DNA of 64,000 bases from Epithemia pelagica (lineage: Eukaryota; Protista; Bacillariophyta): positions 1,426,001 to 1,490,000 of the forward strand of contig OX337231.1 in the NCBI GenBank assembly GCA_946965045.2. Direction: 5' to 3'. Under the pieces are notes generated by a model, which searched no databases, was not told the DNA's origin, and was given only the letters and a program-made list of their open reading frames with translations. Shown here one piece after another: positions 13,842 through 25,816 of this stretch. The translations under genes and the position numbers were made by a program. The stretch's first letter is position 1. The number at the start of each line of letters is the position of its first letter.

Positions 13842-14383
13842 AGAAGATGAGGGAAGATGAGTGATAACCTTATGTTGATGGCATCTCTGCCTATCACATT
13901 GATGCCGATCGATGGCTGAAAGACATCAGCTGATTTACCGCCTTTCGGTCGCTTATTAGTCCCAAGAATCGAAGTAGTCCCGCGCTTTTTTGTTGATCCC
14001 CCTCTTGTACAATGGATACAATGGAGTTGACAATGTACAAGAAGGTTGCGTTCTTACCTTCCAGTTTCACGATGTCATCGAACTCCAACTCTTTCATGGG
14101 TGGCGAAGGGTTGGGGGTTTCGACGAGGCCTACAATACCAGATGGATAGTTGGACTTGAATTCGTCCTGTCAAAGACAAAAACACAGCTAGGTAGGAGTA
14201 GGTAGTTTTACACTTTGCAATGTTAAGTGCGGTATGTTAAAAGCCCAATGTCCCTTACAACATATAAGTTTCAAATCAGGATTGAGCTGCTATATCCATC
14301 ATATCCATACCTACCCTACCTGAGATATTTTTTCTCCGTCATCAACCATGTAGATTGGACTAGTCTTTTCGCACGACGCCTTT

Positions 14384-15310
14384 TCATGGATTTCGTGAAA
14401 TCTTTTGGCTGGAACGTCCTTCCATTTCCTGTTTGACAGGAGCTAGTGGCACGGGCGCCGCATGGTTGTGCAAGTGTGTCGCTTGTTGGGCCGTCATGCA
14501 GCCCATGGCAATGAGTTTGACCGACTGGATGCCACGCCATAGAATCATTCCAATTTGCCAACAAGCACGGGCCGCTCGGCCACCTTCGCCACTGCATTCC
14601 TGTGCACCTTGGCTTTCGGGAGCGCAGCAACCGACCAAACAGGATGCACAGGACAGACAAAAGGCACACCCACAACAGGCTCGCATGATCTGACCAAAAC
14701 AGTCGGTACACTTGTTGACACGAATTTCGGTAGGATCTTGGCCCAAACCATATTCTTCCCGTACCAACCGACGTGTCACATTGTGAGCACAACAGACACT
14801 GTAAAGCCCTCCCAGACAGCACACTTCGAGACACAAAAAGGCCTCAGGACACTTGTCTTCTCCATAGGTGCCCGATCGAATCGTAATGGGCGCACCTGGA
14901 CAGGCCCGAGCACAACATTGTGGACCGTCGTGGAATCCTTGCCACAGTTTGTATCGAGTCATATCTCCATGCAACGCTTGGCGACGAGCAACCCATTGGC
15001 CGCAGCAGGGACACATTGTGGCAAAGCAACACATGGCTGGATTGCGGACGGGTGTTTGTAACATGGCCACATCCCATCCACCACCAGAACCCTGAGGTTG
15101 TTCCGAATTTTGCGGTTCGGCGGCAAAGCAAAAGACTATGGGAAAGGCCAAGGGACTCCCAAAACACCAAATGAGATCGGCACAATACTCAATCGGGCCG
15201 GCTGTGCATTCCAAACAGTCGGCACACACACTAAAACAGGGATCCAATCCACATCCTCCCGTCCAACAATCGCAACAAATGTTGCTGACACAATCCTGTC
15301 CGGCGTTCAT
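14384..15310 (-). CDS. PLAC8/Plant-Cadmium-Resistance-like Cys-rich protein
   Basis: W…CCFATMCPCC (CCXXXXCPC) motif and CC…TRRLVREEYGL, typical of PLAC8. Extremely Cys-rich; first ATG at 15310. Confidence 0.75.
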   Translation of the reverse strand: MNAGQDCVSNICCDCWTGGCGLDPCFSVCADCLECTAGPIEYCADLIWCFGSPLAFPIVFCFAAEPQNSEQPQGSGGGWDVAMLQTPVRNPAMCCFATMCPCCGQWVARRQALHGDMTRYKLWQGFHDGPQCCARACPGAPITIRSGTYGEDKCPEAFLCLEVCCLGGLYSVCCAHNVTRRLVREEYGLGQDPTEIRVNKCTDCFGQIMRACCGCAFCLSCASCLVGCCAPESQGAQECSGEGGRAARACWQIGMILWRGIQSVKLIAMGCMTAQQATHLHNHAAPVPLAPVKQEMEGRSSQKISRNP

Positions 15311-15555
15311 TGTGAAATCAATGTAGGTCGACTTCAAGGATTTCGGGTGCTTCTGGATACAACCAAACGATTGTTGTTCCGAAAGCCAATTGGCAATTTG
15401 GAACGATTGATTTTCCTGTCTCCAATAAAAAAGGACGGGTCAAGTCGAAAAAGTGAGGGGATAGAAAATGACCGGTCACATCAAGACCAAAAGACCCTTC
15501 TAAATTTAAATTTAACTTTTGAACACTTTCCTAACCGATGACCGTTATTTAAAAA

Positions 15556-18500
15556 ATGGAGCACAATCGAGCAATCCAGATTCTGATGGATCTTCGCTCA
15601 TTCTATCCATCATCCTCTCATCTCTTTGTTGTTGTTGAGGCCATGGTGGTCTCCACCGCTCTTTCGGCTGTGATTGCCAGTACTTTACAACTTCTTCGCT
15701 TGTCCGTGGATTTAATTCAAATTGCATCCTCGCCTCCACCGTCGTCGTCTGCAACACAAGGTGGCAGCAGAGGTCCGTCCTCCGAAGGCGATGCCAAGAG
15801 CCAACCACCGAACGAATCTGCTACGACCGATCCAAAGATTCCCAACTATGGAAGTGTCCATCCTAGTAGTGACAGCCACGAAACCAAGCCGTTGCTTTCC
15901 GGTGATGAAGAAAATGCCCTGACGACCAATACGGCATTGAATGAATCGGACCCATCCAATCGCAGCACCACACAACGTCGATTTCGATTGTTCCTGGCGG
16001 CTTGGCTGGTAGCCGCTGTGGTGTTTGTTGTTACGATTGTGGTTTCGAAACACAGTTCGTCATCCTCCACACAACAAGGCTCTTTTGATGTCGTCTACCC
16101 TTCGTCCTTGGTGATTGCTACCATTCTTGTGATGATGGTAGAGATTGCTTGTCACTTTTTGGATGCCGAGAGACTTCATTACGGTGCCTTCCGACGCCTT
16201 CTACGCCTAACGGCTCTTTTGGTATTGTGGTGCACCTTTTTGACGCACCTTCTTCATTTCGAGTCCTCCGCGTCGCGACCAAACCGGTGGTCTTTTAACG
16301 CAAGGAACGTACTGCTTGTGGATGTTACTTTTCTTGTGGTCTTGGCCGTCGCCGATGGGTGGGTGACCAATACGCATCCTACACCGGCTCGACGTGAGTC
16401 ACTGGACCAAGCCGCACATCAACCTACCTTGTCTCGAGCCGCTCTCCTCCAACTTGTCAAACCATATGTCTGGCCCGATGCCACGAGTGAAACTGCCTTG
16501 TGGAATCGAGTGCGGGCCATTGCCACGTGGGTATGCGTCATTTGCAGCAAGGCGTGCAGTTTACTTACTCCCCTGTTGTTGGGTCAAGCTTCGACGGCCT
16601 TGGCGCATCAAGACTATGGTGGCACGATTCGTTTGGTGATTTTGTACAGTGCCATTTCCTGGTTGGGATCCACCTTCAAGGAAGGACAATTTTTGTTTTA
16701 TCTCAAAGTTGGACAAGCAGCCTTTGTTCAACTGTCGGAAGCCTCCTTTGATCACTTGCATCACTTGTCGTTGGACTGGCATTTGCGGAAAAAACTGGGA
16801 GAAGTCCTTCGAAGTGTCGATCGAGGCATTGCCGCGTGTGATACGTAAGTGAATCTGTTGCTAGTTGCGAGACACGGGCTTGTTGACGAATCTATACATG
16901 TACTCATCTTTTTTCTCTCTGTTTCTGATATCGATGTTATAGACTCATGAAATATCTCTTTTTACGACTTGTACCGGCATTGACGGAATGCCTTTTGGTG
17001 ACCATTATTTTTGCCACCTACTTCAAGTACTTTCCATTGGCAGTGACTGTGTTTTACTTCGTTTTTGTCTACATTGTCTGGACGATTCTGGTAACTCTCT
17101 GGCGGAAAAAGTTCCGGAAAGCTCTGGTCAAGCATGACAATGGTAAGAATGGGAATGGTTTCTTTTGTCTGTGCGCAAAATAGCGCTAATTTTTTTGACT
17201 ATTCCACAGAGTGGCACGATTTGTTCACGGACAGCATGATCAATTTTGAAACAGTCAAACACTTTACCGCGGAGAACTACGAACTTGGTCGTTTCCGCAA
17301 CGCCGTGAATCGTTATCAAATGGGATCTGTTCATGTACAAGGATCCTTGTCCTTTCTGAATGTTTCGCAAAAGCTGCTCTTTCAAACATGCATGGCCACC
17401 TCCCTTTCATTGGCAGTTTGGGGTATCGAACAGCGGATTTCGTGTTGTACCGAAACTGTGGGCTGTGAATCTGCCTTGTCCGATTGCTGTCGAAATGTAT
17501 CGAGCAATATATGCCCAGGAATGGAGGTGGGAGATTTTGTGGCCGTTCTCACCTATTTGGTCAATCTCTTTGCTCCCTTGGACTTTTTGGGAACGGTGTA
17601 CAATGCTGTTGTCATGGCCATGATTGATTTAGCCAGTCTTTCGGAGCTGCTGGCAGAGAATCCAGACGTTGTGGATGCGGAAGATGCTGTGGAGCTCCCA
17701 CTTGCCAATCGACTCGATCCTGATACGGCTGTGGAATTTGACAATGTGTTCTTTCGTTACCCCACGCAACCCGAGAACAAGGGCTTGCAGGGAGTATCAT
17801 TCAAAATGAAGCGGGGGACGACAACCGCAATTGTGGGTCCGACAGGTGAGTTTTATTCCATACACTTGTTCTTGGATTGTTCTAGATTTTTTCTCAAAGC
17901 AAGAGTTGGTCATGCACAGGTGCGGGAAAGACAACCATTAGCCGATTGCTGTTTCGGTTTTATGATGTATTGGGCGGATCGGTCAAGATCAATGGCACAG
18001 ATGTTCGTTCTATGACGCAAAAATCTCTTCGAGGTGCCATTGGTGTTGTCCCTCAGACTGCCAGTATGTTTAACGACACTATTCGATCCAATCTGTTGTA
18101 CGGGCGTAGAGACGCCACGGAGGCGGAACTGATTCAAGCTGCCAAGGATGCCCAGCTCCTCGACTTTATTGGATCGTTGGATGAGGGATGGGATACGATT
18201 GTAGGCGATCGTGGGTTGAAACTTTCTGGTACGTGCATCACCTTGTGTTCCCTTTCTTAGAGTTGTTTTGTATTCTTATCTTTGTGCTCATTAATTTTAT
18301 TTTGGAAAGGTGGTGAAAAGCAACGAGCTGCCATTGCTCGTTGTCTTCTGAAAGACCCTCCGTTTGTCCTTCTGGACGAAGCAACAAGTGCATTGTAAGT
18401 CGTTGGGGCCTACCTCCGAAAGGCACAATGTTTCGCACCTAATATTTCTGCTTTTTCTCTCAGAGATACGTTGACTGAAAGTTCTGTCCAAGAGGCACTG

Positions 18501-18698
18501 GACAGGCTCGGCAAACAAAGGACTGTTTTGGTTATAGCCCATCGACTCACAACGGTTCGCAATGCGGATAAGATTATCGTATTGAAAGACGGAGTTGTCG
18601 CCGAAGAGGGAACTCATGATGAGTTGTTGTCCTTGAACCGTATCTACGCTGACATGTGGAACGTTCAAAGAAAAGATTCCAGACAATCCGCAGCGTAG
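15556..18698 (+). CDS. HMT1: ABCB half-transporter, HMT1/ABCB6 type (917 aa, 5 introns)
   Basis: Exons 15556-16844, 16943-17142, 17210-17845, 17920-18228, 18310-18394 and 18464-18698 sum to 2754 nt. They rebuild GPTG|AGKTT, LS|GGEKQR and DEATSAL|D. Also [21 protein letters not shown] and a hydrophobic N-terminal extension. Confidence 0.9.
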
Positions 18699-18768
18699 CT
18701 AGCAAACTCAAGCTCTATGGATAGTTCATAAGTGGATTAACATTAAGCAGTGGGCGTCGCTAATATTA

Positions 18769-19801
18769 TCAAGGGTCTTCAAACCGCTCAACGGATTCAA
18801 GCTGCACTTCCTCTGATTCCATCATCTCGAGTCCCAGCGCTCCTTCAGATATCATGTTGACACCAATATCCGCAGCAGCTCCTGCAGGGAGTTCTTCGTC
18901 AATATCCTGTTCCCATTCTTCTTCCTCTTCTTCGTCCCATTCTTCTTCTTCCTCTTCATCCTCCGATTCTTCCTCATTGTCTTCCCACTCGTCCTCGTCC
19001 CATTCTTCTTCCTCTTCATCCCAATCTTCGTCCCATGCAACCATATCCTCGATCAATGGTTCGGGGTGGGGACCTTCGGGTGGAGGGGGTGGAGGAGGAA
19101 ACTTGCCAGGATGGGGGAAGGGTGGCTCTTCTTCCTGTAGAATCCCTGGAGGAGGTGGAGGGGGAGGAGGACCCTCACCCACGGGAGGTTCAGGGCGAGG
19201 GGGAGGAGGAGGAGGCGGGAAAGGTCCCCCATCTTCAGGTGGGACGCCTGGGGGTGGAGGGGGAGGAGGAGGTCCTTCATGCCACTCATCGTGATGATGA
19301 GGTCCATGATGATGGTCTCCTTTGTGGGACTGGTAAGACAATAACATGAGGTTAGTGGACTAGAAATTGAAAAAAAAAAGTTTTTTAAGCCATCGCTGTT
19401 CAATCTCATCATGAAACACTTACATGATCGCCATGGTGGTGGTGCCAGTCTCCGTCATGATGACTGTCGTGATCATGATGGTGATGCCCATCGTGGCTGT
19501 CGTGGTGATGCCCCTTGTGACTGTTGTGATCATGATGGTGATGCTCATCATGGTCGCCATGATGATGGTGGCAAGGCTTCTTGTCATGGCTTGATCGAAG
19601 GAAAAGCGAGTTTCCAGAATGCCCTTGGAAGTTTTCCGTCATGAGCAAAATCAACAAAAATACAATCGTAGTTACCCCGACAACGGCCGGCAAAGCGCAC
19701 CATCGGCTCCTGCGACGATCGGACTCCACCGTCACTGCCTCCGCCAACACTGGAGACTTCCCAGTGTCCTTGGTCGGGACAGCTTCATACTGTTTCGTCA
19801 T
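18769..19801 (-). CDS. Type II membrane protein with His-rich, Pro-rich and Asp/Glu-Trp-rich extracytosolic blocks (312 aa, 1 intron)
   Basis: Exons 19801-19424 and 19329-18769 (94-nt GTAAGT…CAG intron, phase 0). One TM helix, about 36 His in about 73 residues, poly-Pro runs, then WDEDWDEEEEEW. Confidence 0.8.
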
Positions 19802-21102
19802 GGTTTTACTTGTTTCTCCTATGATAGAAAGCAAAACAATAAGGTAAACGAAAGAAGGTTCATCATGCTGCTCTCGACCCAGAACTCTAACTCACATCAC
19901 TCCCTATCAGGACGAAAGTGTAATCGATTCGGAGCCCCAACCACAGCGCGCATTGTTCTATGAATGAACGCTGAGGAATCTGAGAAAGCAAGACTGATCT
20001 CCTTAATTCCTATCTTCTGAGTACTTTTATCAGAACAATACTCAGAATAAAGTTCTTGCCTTTTTCGCTAGGACGTGCAAATGATCGTGCGAAAAAAGTC
20101 GCCGGTCGTGCAAATATGTTTTTATGCGACTAAGAAGCGACATCCTCACTTTGGAATACATCTCAACTCTCAACGGCTCTAAAACCAAGGAAGGGCCGAA
20201 AGGAAAACATACACATCCTGTTTCGACGACGTACTTGCTCTTGGGAGTCGCAGTAGGGATGATCTTGGGTTCCGTACCACCTATATCGACATTGTCTTTG
20301 GAGATGCATGGGCGAAATTGATAGATATGAAGCAGTCATGAGCAAGGATTGAAAGTGATCAGGAACACGATCCAATCACCTTTGGGATGTCATGAGCCAG
20401 GATTGGAAATTGGAAGCGGTCAGGACCACGATCCAGGCAACTTTGAGTGGTGATAAGCAACCGAAAGTAAGCCGCAATTCATTACAAGTAGTTCCGATGG
20501 TTGCGACTTACGACAAGACGGTGAATCCAACTGAACTTCGAACATCGAAACAGAATGCAAAACCCTGACTCTCCGCTCATAATGACACGTTTGCTTTTGG
20601 TTTGATGCAAACTACAGCGTGAGTTCGGGTGCCAGGATTAATATCAAGACTTTCAATATATCAGTACGAGTACTCACTAGTCTACTCACCCAGTGAAAGT
20701 AATTGTGATTGGGCATGAAAGCGTGTCGGCTTGCTCGCAAGTAGGATTGATGATGCCTTAAAAATTCAATCCAAGACAGATATGATTCAAAAACTGTACA
20801 TTTCGCATATATGGAGTACATTTCGATTGTCCCCATCACGCCAGCCTACCGTAGATTCCCCCACTCCATAGTAATACTTATGGTCCTCGCTATTTTTGAA
20901 CGCCACTCACTGAGGTTTTGAAGTCAAACTGCGCGTATGCGGTCATGTGTATCAAATCGAGGTCTCCTTCCACAATTTGAACGAGAGACGCCTTGTGTAC
21001 TTCTGAATCTCGTCTCTCGATATTCGAGATATATCTTATAAACTTGGATCGAGGAGACTTTGTACGAGCAACAAACCCATGGTCCGTAATCTCCACGCGA
21101 CA

Positions 21103-23343
21103 ATGAACGTCCTGAGACTGCTTGCGATTGCGGAACTTTGTGCCGTGGCACTTGGGCAGACTCCAACAGCGTCTCCCACCCAAGCGATCCTATCCTCAAA
21201 CCCTTCGGTCACGCCGAGTCAGGCCCCGATAGCTCCCACGCATCAACCGAGCTCAGTGCCTTCCTCTACACCCACTGTTGGGCCGACAACCACCATGGTT
21301 CCCTCCGACAGGCCCACGGTGTCGCCGTCAACCAGTCCCAGTTTCCAACCCACAGTTCCACCGTCACAAGAGCCTAGTTCTACTCCGTCGCAAATGCCGA
21401 CTAGCCCTCCTACTTCATCGTCGATGCCATCCGCGTCGCCGTCAAGTATGCCTACCATGTCTCCCTCAATCTCAAGCCCACCAAGCACCAACCCGACCAG
21501 TATGCCTTCTTCCTCCAGTCAGCCATCTGGTGTGCCATCAACTACGCCTTCTGCTATCCCAACTACGACGCCCTCTATTTCATCCCGTAAGTTGATCAAA
21601 ATGCCAGACTGCCTCTCTTTTGCGTTTAAGGACATTCTCTCACATGCATTTCTGCTGTAAGAACCCACGGTATCGGCGAACCCGACGAGTGAACCATCAG
21701 TCAGTCCTTCTCAGTTTCCCAGTGCTCTGCCATCCGCAATGCCCTCGCCTGATTCAGGTGTTTCTGGAATCATTAGGGAGAGCGGAAAACAACCCTTTGA
21801 TGAGTTTCTTGTGACAATTTTTGTCGGTCCCATGCAATTGCGTGGAAGGAAACTTTCGTCAATCGGGGTGCAGTCGCAGGCAGTTATTCTTTTCACCTTT
21901 GAAGAGCATATTCGGGAAATTGTCCCTCATCTTCGTGAAGTGGAACTACGCATTACAACCGTTCAAGAGGTTACAATGCCTGATGGAACTGTTGCAACAA
22001 CCGAAGCAGTCAATGGAGAAGTTCTCCTTGACGTGGGCGTGACCATGCCACGGGAGCAAATCGACATTGATGTTCAGAGCGCATTTCAAGGTCAAAATTT
22101 AACCATCTTGATGGGGGACCTACTACTGTCTGGCGACAAAGTTTTGGAAAACATAAATGATATTGACTTTGGTATTCCTCCGGGTTTGGCACTGTTTGCT
22201 GGTCCTCAGGGAAACAGTGATGACGAAGATGATGAGCTTTTCAATGAACTCCTTCCTCAGGCTATTATCCTTTTGGGAATGACAGTGGTTTTTCTTTCTG
22301 GTCTGGTATTCTTTCTCTTTGTGGCCCGTCGCGCTCGTCAAAACCGAACATTATCCTCAATCGAGGCAACCAAGCATGCTGAAACGAATTATCCGAACCA
22401 TGACGTCCCACAAAACATTGCATCTGGAGATGGAGTGCACGGAGGCACGATTTCCGAGCTTGCTGCTGAAAGCTTGGACGGGAGCGTCTCTGACCTAGCT
22501 TCCTTGTACTCATATCGGGATCAGTCCCTGCTGGCCAATCATACGCTCGACAACACTCCAGACGAGACGGGTTCCTATGCCCCGTCCTACTGCTTCAGCA
22601 CGATAGAGGTAGATGAACAAAGCAGAACTTCCGGAGCCGGAAGGTCTCTCCGTGATACTTCAAAATCCAACAGCTTACAGCCGAAGACAGACCCAGCGAC
22701 GCTCTACGGTTTTGACGACAATGGTTCTTTTGCAAGTGAGAAGAGCAACAGTCGTAGACCTCGCCGCCGTACGAAAGCATCGCGCCCTTCGAGGTCCGGG
22801 CAACTCACATCAATCAACAAAAGAACAAAGGCACCATCAAGAGGAGCCAAATCATCCGTCAAAGTACACTCCCTTGCATCCCATAGCTTCCACATGTCTG
22901 GACCAGGTGGCAATGAGAGTGATGCTGATACTGACAGTTCTCAATCTCGTGACGTTTTGTCTCAAGTTATGGAGGCATCAGAAACGAGTTCACGCGACGA
23001 ATCCGCAGGGTCAGCAAATGGTCACCAAAATGAAAAGGCCAACAAAGATCATCAATATAATCTCATGGCACAGTTGGATGGGGAAAACAGCGACGATGAC
23101 GAAGAAAGCTTATTCATGGGACCATCTGCTGCCTTTGTTGCCAGGTCAGGAACGGTTAATCCACTGAGAATCGACCTTGGACCTCTCGCAGACCCTGACG
23201 AATCCCGTCGACATGAAAGCTCTGAACTGGATACAGACGATGACGATAATTTGAGAAATGAATCGACTTTCAATTCTTTGAACACATCTGTTGTCAGTTC
23301 TGCAGATGAAGAGGAACACTCTCAAAAGGTTACAATTGTTTGA
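21103..23343 (+). CDS. Type I membrane protein with PT/PS-rich stalk, SEA-like domain and Ser-rich tail (721 aa, 1 intron)
   Basis: Exons 21103-21586 and 21662-23343 join in frame. Signal peptide, P-S/T repeats, RGRKL motif, TM AIILLGMTVVFLSGLVFFLFV. Confidence 0.75.
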
Positions 23344-23636
23344 GTCAATCCTGAAAGAGATTTACAGGCTTCATTCCCATCATCATCAACTATACGCATA
23401 CACCTTCCACGACATCCTATGAGCTATGAGACCTTCGCATCTCGCATCTTCCCGAGGTTCTTGGCCCAGTTCTTGCTCAAAGATCCTGTACAACTTCATA
23501 TTTTAAGACATCTACTCCATGTTTTCCAGTTTCCAGTCATTACCTAGTAGGTAATTCAAAGTGAAATCCTCTTTATTGAAAATTGATAACCTAATGAACA
23601 TGTTTGAAGCTACTCTTAATCCATGAAATGTCTCAA

Positions 23637-25816
23637 CTATGAAATGGGGGGAATTTTGTTCTCGCCACTGTCCTCAGATGTGTCGTCAGGTAGCCCAGCA
23701 ATTGCCGCATCGTTTCCCTCATCTTCCTGAAACCGTCTTTTGCCATAGTATACAGCCGACTCCGTAACATCATTGCTTCGTTGACCTGTTGCGTTTGGCT
23801 GAACCGTGCTGACAAACTTTCCAAACTCGGGTATGTCTTGATCGCTGAATAGCGCATTTGAATCGTCATTGAATGGATTGAACTCAAATTGTGCATCGTC
23901 ATGGAAATAAATGCTTCTTTCCTTATCTTCAGAAATTGCGGCACCGTTCAATCTTTGAATATCGTCTTGTTCCGATGTCGTCTCAACGGGTGATACAAGA
24001 TTATCACCAGTTAAGTCAATGGTTCGAAACTGCTCATCGCTGAAAGCACCTTCCAGATCATGCTTTCCCCGTGCTCCCAAGCGACCAGGAGAACTACCGT
24101 CCTCATCGCCGTCGGAGTAAACGCTATTGAGAGGCGATTCAACATGGGGAGCGAACATCTTAAACTTCTGAGATCTTTTCCTCAAATAGAACACCACAAC
24201 AACAGCCATTACGACAAAGACGAAGCAAACAATGATCACAACTACAATCAGAACTGAGATACCACCAGAGTCTCCATCGGAACCATCTTGCCCTGAGGAA
24301 GGGGGGAGAGGAGAGGCGTTGTCCGGATCGTACTCTCGGATCATTCTGATTGGAATCTCTTTGTTGTTCAACCATTCAATGAGCTCAGCAAGGTTGTTAC
24401 CCTTGAAGAAATTGGCCACAACTTGCTGCAGAGTCTCTTTTGTGAAAGAAGCCATGTCCTCTCTCGAGCCTTGGAGCTCAAAGTCCACTGTGATTTCAAA
24501 AATGTTTAAGAAGAACTGTGAGTCACCTTCTTCCGTAGATTGTCCCTCGTTTGTGTTTTCTACAAAGGTCAAGGTAAGCTTGTAAGTTCTCAGAAGGAAT
24601 CCAACATTCTTCGCGAGGTAGGGAGTGAGCAGAAACTGCGTTTGCTTGAAGAACTCTTTCTCAACATCTACCAGGTCGATCTCACCAACTGTTTCATAGG
24701 CAATAGGGTCCGATTGTATCTGTCTCTGCAAGATTGGCGGTTGTACTGGCGCTGCTACAATGGTTGGTGCAGGAGTTGGGTCAGGTTCAATTTCCACTAC
24801 CGTTTTCGGAGGATTCAGTATTGAAATGTCGAACGTTGGGTAAGTGGGCTCCGTCCAGGTCGGAGCTGCAACTGGAGAGAACCAATTTCCAAAGGCTTGC
24901 TGGTCAGAGCCAGGTAATAATGAAGGAGATGGTGATAGAGTTGGCGTAGGCTCGGTCGGGCTGGTAACTGGGGCTTTTGCAGGCGTGGCGGTAGGGAGCG
25001 AGATGTGGGAACCAAACGGCTCGTATCCTGGAATGTTTGGGGCTGGTAATACGAATGGTATCAAAGGTGTTAGCTCGCGTCAATTCAGAACCAATTCTGA
25101 AACAATGTCAACTTACGTGTATCCCATGGACCCATAATGGTAGTTATTAACGGATTGCCGTCGCTATCGAATGTCGTTTTGGCGAGGGCAATGTTTGGCT
25201 CTTGGTGATTAACAGTATAACTGTTGTCGTGACTCCATGGATTCTGAACTCTGGGATCGTTTTGGCCTCTTCGGCCATTGGTGTTTTGTCCTCTGACGGC
25301 TCCATATGGGTTTTGCCTTGTGTTGTGGTTTCCATAGTTTGTTGTCCTGCTTTGTGCCCAAGAAATTGCTTGGTTGTTTTGTGCTGTGGACCCTCCAAAT
25401 GTGCGTTGACCTCTTGTGTCTTCGTACGGTTTCTTTCTCGATTGTTCCACATAGGTTCGTTGATCCGTTCTTCCAGGACTAATCCTCTGTAACCATGGGT
25501 GTTCATATGAAGCGCTGTTGCTAATCGCCGCATTTCCTCCAAAGCCTGAAAAAGCTCCTGAATTCCCGCCAAAGCCTGAAAAATCTGTCGCTGAAGACCT
25601 TGTATTCTCATAACTTTGTTGGTCTCGATTGTACTCATTGCTGAAATAGTCGTTCCATAACGTCCTTTGTTTGCCTTTCACATTTGCAGAGACAAAAGAC
25701 GGACCATGTCCTTCCGCCTCTCTTAGACTCCCATCCACGGTGTCACCAAGGAAGAACAACGCGAGGGTCAAGCCTGTAAGGGCGGCCCCAATCATCTTTT
25801 TGATTCCGCTTCCCAT
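23637..25816 (-). CDS. Type I membrane protein with RXL propeptide, N/Q-rich region, PT-rich stalk and SEA-like domain (701 aa, 1 intron)
   Basis: Exons 25816-25117 and 25042-23637 (74-nt intron with GCTAAC branch site) join in frame. Signal peptide, QRTL, TM ISVLIVVVIIVCFVFVVMAVVVVFYL. Confidence 0.7.

Follow-up and report, generated by a model that had tools for sequence, protein, structure and literature searches.

The question raised by this locus is whether three genes that lie side by side in a diatom genome form a functional unit for handling metals. The locus occupies positions 14384-19801 of the window, by which we mean the whole 64,000-nucleotide stretch of Epithemia pelagica DNA that was analysed (contig OX337231.1, positions 1,426,001 to 1,490,000, or C4:1426001-1490000 in the numbering used here for the 60.5-Mb, 23-contig assembly in which all genome-wide searches were made). 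It holds gene 1 on the reverse strand, encoding a Cys-rich protein, an ABC transporter gene (the ABC gene) on the forward strand, and gene 3 on the reverse strand, encoding a His-rich protein. A preliminary description had read the three as a co-regulated, operon-like cluster for heavy-metal detoxification, consisting of a PLAC8/plant cadmium resistance (PCR) protein, an HMT1-like transporter and a His-rich membrane protein. The three adjacent genes are real, and their coordinates and spacings (245 bp and 70 bp) were reproduced. We conclude that they are probably three independent genes in separate transcription units of a compact diatom genome, with synteny at the level of the genus. The adjacency of the trio is most simply explained as local synteny of the Epithemia lineage rather than as a selected metal-handling module, and among the three genes only the ABC transporter is a recognizable metal gene. 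The gene models on which this rests are as follows.

14384..15310, reverse strand: gene 1, a coding sequence in a single exon (ATG at 15310, stop at 14384-14386; 308 residues).
15311..15555 (to 15642 with the second ATG), no strand: intergenic spacer between the divergent gene 1 and ABC gene, from the coordinates.
15556 (or ATG 15643)..16844, forward strand: ABC exon 1, the N-terminal extension and the start of the core transmembrane domain (from hydropathy, the PF00664 match, the donor site and the starts of the orthologues).
16943..17142, forward strand: ABC exon 2, transmembrane domain (splice-junction peptides agree with E. clementina P0303).
17210..17845, forward strand: ABC exon 3, the end of the transmembrane domain and the start of the nucleotide-binding domain as far as the first half of Walker A (from PDB matches).
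17920..18228, forward strand: ABC exon 4, the second half of Walker A to the start of the signature motif (from the Pfam match and junctions).
18310..18394, forward strand: ABC exon 5, signature motif and Walker B (from junctions).
18464..18698, forward strand: ABC exon 6, D-loop, H-loop, C-terminus and stop (from junctions).
19424..19801, reverse strand: gene 3 exon A, predicted cytosolic N-terminus, transmembrane helix and first part of the His-rich tract (from the reading frame and hydropathy).
18769..19329 (or 19359), reverse strand: gene 3 exon B, the end of the His-rich tract, poly-Pro, a Trp-punctuated Asp/Glu block and the stop (from the reading frame).

The orientation of the genes does not bear out an operon-like arrangement. 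Gene 1 and the ABC gene stand head-to-head with an ATG-to-ATG gap of 245 bp, or of 332 bp if the ABC gene starts at 15643 (the candidate starts are ATG 15556 and ATG 15643, and the orthologues use the one at 15643), and the ABC gene and gene 3 stand tail-to-tail with 70 bp between their stops. Divergent plus convergent orientation gives three transcripts and never one. Compared with known eukaryotic gene clusters and bidirectional pairs, the trio is alike in its tight spacing and in having a divergent pair kept in a congeneric species, but it differs in that the third gene is convergent and in that the linkage of gene 1 and the ABC gene is not kept beyond the genus. Distances of 150-600 bp are typical between neighbouring open reading frames (ORFs) of the window, so that close spacing is ordinary here. 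The orientation bears directly on the proposal of a co-regulated metal-detoxification module of all three genes, in which gene 1 would be a PCR-like Cd/Zn exporter or chelator, the ABC protein a vacuolar pump for phytochelatin-bound metal and gene 3 a luminal metal buffer, because gene 3 and the ABC gene, being convergent, share no promoter.

Linkage of the orthologues in other diatoms, which the preliminary description had put forward as one way to check its proposal, was found within the genus. In E. clementina, which has the nearest orthologues that carry a species name, those of the ABC gene (ACA910_022420) and of gene 1 (ACA910_022421) carry consecutive locus tags on one 476-kb contig. 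The gene 1 and ABC orthologues lie on different contigs both in Cyclotella cryptica (HJC23_011437 versus HJC23_002338) and in Stephanocyclus meneghinianus (ACHAWX_001300 versus ACHAWX_007646). A metagenome scan with the gene 1 profile recovered 24 loci, in none of which did tblastn find a homologue of an ABC exon or of gene 3. At least four independent environmental contigs (L018, L031, L033/L035/L037) extend for 3.6-10 kb in the direction expected for the ABC gene and have no ABCB gene there, and the neighbours on that side of the environmental gene 1 loci are instead WW-domain, E2, Tudor, Hint and ABC-2 genes. Judged from two Epithemia species, two species of Thalassiosirales and the environmental contigs, the linkage is confined to Epithemia, which is the pattern that plain recent synteny predicts.

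The same data bear on a narrower proposal, that only the divergent pair is coupled, with gene 1 and the ABC gene co-expressed from a bidirectional promoter and gene 3 a bystander; the gene 1 product, as a Cys-rich membrane protein, could then partner the pump or serve as an adaptor for its cargo. By its position the spacer 15311-15555 is a possible bidirectional promoter for the pair, and the head-to-head arrangement over 245-332 bp, the survival of the adjacency in E. clementina despite substantial sequence divergence and the diatom-wide distribution of both families all speak for such coupling; however, short divergent spacers are usual in the window, the split in C. cryptica, Stephanocyclus and the environmental contigs means that any coupling is not ancestral, and no shared motif was found in the spacer, neither strand of which contains the metazoan-type metal response element core (TGCRCNC, the metazoan consensus). 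On this evidence we consider coupling of the pair possible but unlikely.

The one recognizable metal gene, the ABC gene, has six exons with canonical GT-AG introns of 67-98 nt. The introns interrupt Walker A, the signature motif and Walker B/D-loop, each of which reads correctly over its junction, and the junction peptides at these three places equal those of P0303, the E. clementina orthologue, residue for residue. Searches with the ABC gene and gene 3 took their individual exons as queries, and full-length P0303 was used to represent the whole transporter. The product is a half-transporter with one transmembrane domain (PF00664), the core of which has six helices, and one nucleotide-binding domain (PF00005), in which the H-loop is also intact. 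Ahead of the core, the hydropathy of exon 1 gives five hydrophobic helices (residues 21-47, 141-169, 176-204, 215-233 and 247-271), the first of them followed by a long low-complexity loop. Exhaustive phmmer searches showed this N-terminal extension to be common to homologues of 830-900 residues from diatoms, oomycetes (Peronospora) and one dinoflagellate. A hydrophobic N-terminal extension on a half-transporter is described as a distinguishing trait of HMTs in PMC2944878.

Searched against the PDB, exons 1 and 3 hit the Atm1/ABCB7/HMT1/ABCB6 group and no other before generic ABCB proteins appear, and the best matches of exon 3 are AtATM3 (top), NaAtm1 and ABCB6. Within this group the window transporter might be a mitochondrial ATM1/ABCB7-type exporter of Fe-S or glutathione-polysulfide substrates, as the first place of AtATM3 for exon 3 alone and the JGI name of some orthologues ('ABC-type transport system involved in Fe-S cluster assembly') would suggest; other orthologues are named 'subfamily B, heavy metal transporter' by JGI or, in Fistulifera, 'ABCB6' by NCBI. 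At full length, P0303 scores 416 bits with ABCB6, 403 with NaAtm1, 399 with AtATM3, 360 with ABCB7 and 353 with yeast Atm1, so that ABCB6 is ahead of ABCB7 and Atm1 by about 55-60 bits. Loci resembling exon 3 number two in the genome, the window gene and one on contig C18 (C18:1503836-1507024), where an intron-less ORF of 838 residues (406-2922 on the reverse strand within the locus) scores 582 bits with AtATM3, 542 with ABCB7 and 357 with ABCB6. To judge by these scores, the C18 ORF is clearly the mitochondrial ATM1/ABCB7/ATM3 orthologue of this genome and a far better one than the window gene, which moreover has a five-helix hydrophobic extension where a presequence would be. Because P0303 favours ABCB6 while the C18 ORF favours AtATM3 and ABCB7, assignment of the window gene as an HMT-1/ABCB6-type half-transporter, and not as mitochondrial ATM1, is supported, and we regard the mitochondrial alternative as very improbable indeed. 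Thus the HMT1/ABCB6 features attributed earlier to the transporter are upheld by the five-helix extension, by the P0303 scores and by the existence of a separate ATM1 on C18, and the grouping with mitochondrial ATM1 that had been named as fatal to the metal-related reading was not found: the C18 ORF takes that role and the order of the P0303 scores is the reverse. The N-terminal 150-190 or so residues of the C18 orthologue extend beyond the part that was aligned to solved structures.

Among known systems the window transporter is most like the HMT-1/ABCB6 proteins (Schizosaccharomyces pombe Hmt1, Caenorhabditis elegans HMT-1 and human ABCB6), with which it shares the half-transporter architecture, a hydrophobic extension of about five helices, intact catalytic motifs and membership of the Atm1/ABCB7/HMT1/ABCB6 group in a genome that has its own separate ATM1 and phytochelatin synthase genes. 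By analogy with these proteins it would most likely act as a homodimer in an endomembrane (vacuole or endolysosome) and would clear the cytosol of Cd and similar metals bound to glutathione or phytochelatin, the substrate and location being suggested by the same comparison. Human ABCB6 holds Cd in its central cavity by means of two glutathione (GSH) or phytochelatin (PC2) molecules (PMC11143254). The window transporter would be expected to act likewise. Phytochelatin synthase (PF05023) is encoded at three unlinked loci elsewhere in the E. pelagica genome, which means that a pathway for the presumed substrate is present. Within its family the transporter is unremarkable, and other diatom genomes already annotate such genes; a literature search found no paper on an HMT1/ABCB6 or PLAC8 gene in diatoms. 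In some diatoms the HMT-type transporter is tandemly duplicated, as observed in Nitzschia sp. Nitz4, where scaffold217 carries two paralogues about 4 kb apart (13984-17003 and 21347-24329). Diatoms are major players in trace-metal cycling, and their sequestration of phytochelatin-bound metals is poorly defined. A single-copy gene of HMT-1/ABCB6 type that is distinct from ATM1 in Epithemia is a useful candidate for the vacuolar step.

Gene 1 had been described as a PLAC8/PCR gene. Its product (308 residues) contains 39 Cys (12.7%) and one CCFATMCPC, at residues 94-102, so that the exact CCXXXXCPC motif on which the description was based stands. Membership of the PLAC8/PCR family does not, and was rejected after Pfam, genome-wide hidden Markov model (HMM) and hhalign comparisons all proved negative. 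A Pfam scan at E up to 10 gave no PLAC8 match in gene 1, in 20 homologues or in its paralogue. The PLAC8 HMM (PF04749), run over the whole genome, found 11 loci (eight above the cut-off alone and a ninth with neighbouring matches summed), and gene 1 was not among them. With hhalign, run in three set-ups, the gene 1 family (21 or 66 sequences) compared with seven to nine PLAC8 proteins of the genome gave a probability of 0.1-0.4% and E values of 0.16-0.52. Of the Cys motif looked for (CCXXXXCPC or CLXXXXCPC), gene 1 has the exact form once, and a minority of the gene 1 family keeps it: CC-x4-CPC is present in 11 of 65 members, those nearest the window protein, and CC-x4-C-x-PC in 36 of the 65, the family consensus being P-x3-CC-x4-C-x-PCGQW-x2-R. 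Gene 1 is therefore like the plant PCR/PLAC8 proteins in its exact CC-x4-CPC followed by GQ, its richness in Cys, its hydrophobic segments and its neighbours in language-model searches, but differs from them in the lack of HMM or profile similarity, in size (308 residues compared with a domain of about 100) and in a family consensus (CC-x4-C-x-PCGQW) whose register is other than that of CCXXXXCPC. On present sequence comparisons, what gene 1 has in common with PLAC8 goes no further than a short Cys motif, and it is not a demonstrable PLAC8 protein.

Genuine PLAC8 genes occur at at least ten places elsewhere in the genome (contigs C1, C3, C4 and C6-C9), and several of their products share a tail beyond the Pfam domain, RHT-x2-YETYP-x2-CC-x-TG-x4-AP-x-IV. 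When seven of the PLAC8 proteins were aligned, their N-terminal Cys segment was found to be without CCXXXXCPC. It is with the C-terminal, not the N-terminal, Cys motif of the diatom PLAC8 proteins that the gene 1 motif aligns, and that non-significantly: a weak lead is given by an hhalign path (E 0.35, not significant) which pairs the CC motif and 'PGAPITI' of gene 1 with the C-terminal Cys motif and 'PGAPITV' tail of PLAC8. Residues 118-144 or so of gene 1 (window 14880-14960) read 'CC-x3-C-PGAPITI', and genuine PLAC8 proteins end in 'CC-x3-G-x2-PGAPITV' or near variants. This might hint, below statistical significance, that the gene 1 family derived from the C-terminal half of diatom PLAC8 proteins.

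What gene 1 does belong to, as judged from its homologues and a predicted structure, is an unannotated, diatom-wide family of Cys-rich helical proteins. The 113 homologues of gene 1, with E values reaching 1e-175, are spread over pennate and centric diatoms (Nitzschia, Fragilaria, Cyclotella, Entomoneis and Amphora among them), and no Pfam domain was matched in any. A paralogue of 224 residues (27% identity, E 2e-17) is encoded on C18 (locus C18:24012-27404, ORF 1318-1989 on the reverse strand), so that the family has at least two subfamilies in this genome; the paralogue is without the first 80 or so residues of gene 1 and likewise has no Pfam match. The UniRef name of a Cyclotella homologue (P0080), 'Phospholipid scramblase', was ruled out as an identity for the family, since none of 21 members has a Scramblase match at E = 10. 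The AlphaFold2 model of gene 1 is all-helical, with a predicted local distance difference test score (pLDDT) of 87 and a predicted template modelling score (pTM) of 0.80. Foldseek comparison of the model with the PDB and BFVD yielded no match with an E value under 2, and wide VIA-align comparison gave only generic long-helix bundles (Z 9.1 or less, which is below the meaningful level for helical proteins); no PLAC8 chain was among the matches. Gene 1 thus marks a conserved diatom-wide Cys-rich family that has no Pfam model and for which a helical fold is confidently predicted without a specific structural match.

Gene 3 encodes a product of about 312 residues from two exons separated by an intron of 94 nt, or of 64 nt with an in-frame alternative acceptor. 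The order of its parts is a short N-terminus ending in RRRSR, a helix at residues 32-59, a His tract that crosses the intron and contains about 35 His per 68 or so residues, poly-Pro blocks and a Trp-punctuated Asp/Glu block; the 192 residues from exon B include 46 Pro, 63 Asp + Glu and 7 Trp. The His tract, the acidic block and the 70-bp distance between stops had been seen correctly in the preliminary description, but the membrane protein of that description is a single-pass and not a polytopic one, as hydropathy shows one hydrophobic helix only and so no polytopic core. The positive-inside rule predicts a type II topology for it, with a luminal or extracellular tail. The matches of gene 3 in Pfam (NicO, E 0.013, 15 bits against a cut-off of 27.7; Zip, E 0.12) are sub-threshold, compositional and confined to the His tract; identity as a ZIP or NicO transporter was rejected on the grounds that these matches are below threshold and the polytopic core is absent. 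Relatives were found neither as a paralogue in the genome nor as a usable protein atlas match nor as a PDB sequence match, and a word-indexed protein search with exon A, confined to proteins of about 70-220 residues, was blank. Dense HxH and HHHH runs among Asp and Gly are shared with the known His-rich tracts (the cytosolic loops of ZIP, CDF and NicO proteins, histidine-rich glycoprotein and bacterial Hpn-like proteins), but gene 3 differs from ZIP, CDF and NicO proteins in being single-pass without a transporter core, and its poly-Pro and Trp-punctuated acidic blocks have no known counterpart among His-rich metal-binding proteins. On chemical grounds the luminal or extracellular tail, rich in His, Pro and acidic residues, would be expected to chelate metal ions, with pH-dependent binding of Zn, Ni, Cu or Cd.

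How unusual these compositions are was assessed in a sample of 264 kb over ten contigs and the window, which contained 142 long open frames. At least 8% Cys was found in two of the 142, gene 1 and an apparently non-coding frame, and none of the 142 reached 15 His per 73 residues. Across the whole genome, dozens of loci have runs of His codons; most of these are microsatellites, with no enrichment relative to a reversed-pattern control, so that no clean frequency can be given. The compositions of genes 1 and 3 are unusual, which could make them a pair of interest for metal response.

Several of the observations weigh against the reading that we prefer, of three independent genes with the transporter as the only recognizable metal gene. 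The first concern the transporter itself, in which the window gene differs from the HMT-1/ABCB6 proteins: besides the low-complexity loop of the extension, the lead of ABCB6 over NaAtm1 and AtATM3 with P0303 is slim (just 13-17 bits), the family call is one of pairwise scores, and the extension shows no detectable sequence similarity to the TMD0 of ABCB6, since the alignments obtained with phmmer and with a 15-sequence profile begin only at ABCB6 residue 228 or 279. N-terminal extensions of such transporters are poorly conserved between lineages. The others concern the neighbours. A protein-language-model search places gene 1 nearest to clusters automatically named PLAC8, at 0.90, which is below the recognition level, so that a remote relation to PLAC8 keeps some probability; the adjacency of gene 1 and the ABC gene has been kept in E. 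clementina though the N-terminal exon of the transporter is only about 55% identical; and on naive independence a metal-ligand-rich neighbour on each side of the single HMT-type gene of the genome is an unlikely coincidence, albeit one picked out in hindsight from a very large scan.

It is on these neighbours that the case for a three-gene module depends. The sole HMT-type gene has on each flank a neighbour with many metal-ligand residues (12.7% Cys on one side and about 35 His per 68 residues on the other), the predicted topology places the His tail of gene 3 in the lumen or on the outer face, where metal moved by the pump would arrive, gene 1 and the ABC gene are a pair in E. clementina as well, and the language-model features of gene 1 resemble those of PLAC8; yet none of the HMM and profile comparisons puts gene 1 in that family, the exact CCXXXXCPC is kept by a minority of its own relatives, the shared promoter is missing on the gene 3 side and the linkage of gene 1 to the transporter is gone outside Epithemia. 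Such a module would have to be a young one of Epithemia, in which an HMT-1-type pump was joined by gene 1, from a diatom-specific family, and by a newly arisen gene 3 that buffers metal in the lumen served by the pump, and we judge both the co-regulated module in general and this form of it to be quite improbable. If it were true, with the neighbours responding to metals together with the pump, the locus would be a rare young functional gene neighbourhood in a diatom; if the neighbours do not respond, it is a case in which reading at the level of motifs (CCXXXXCPC, His runs) over-calls function.

The genes that flank the trio (SUMO-like, DnaJ, methyltransferase, ankyrin and leucine-rich repeat genes, and unknowns) are unrelated to it. 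Directly past gene 3, the stretch 21079-23343 on the forward strand holds a mucin-like ORF rich in Pro, Ser and Thr, the start of which resembles a signal peptide, and 79 bp after it an ORF of 534 residues without a Pfam match; the two may be exons of one secreted or cell-surface protein.

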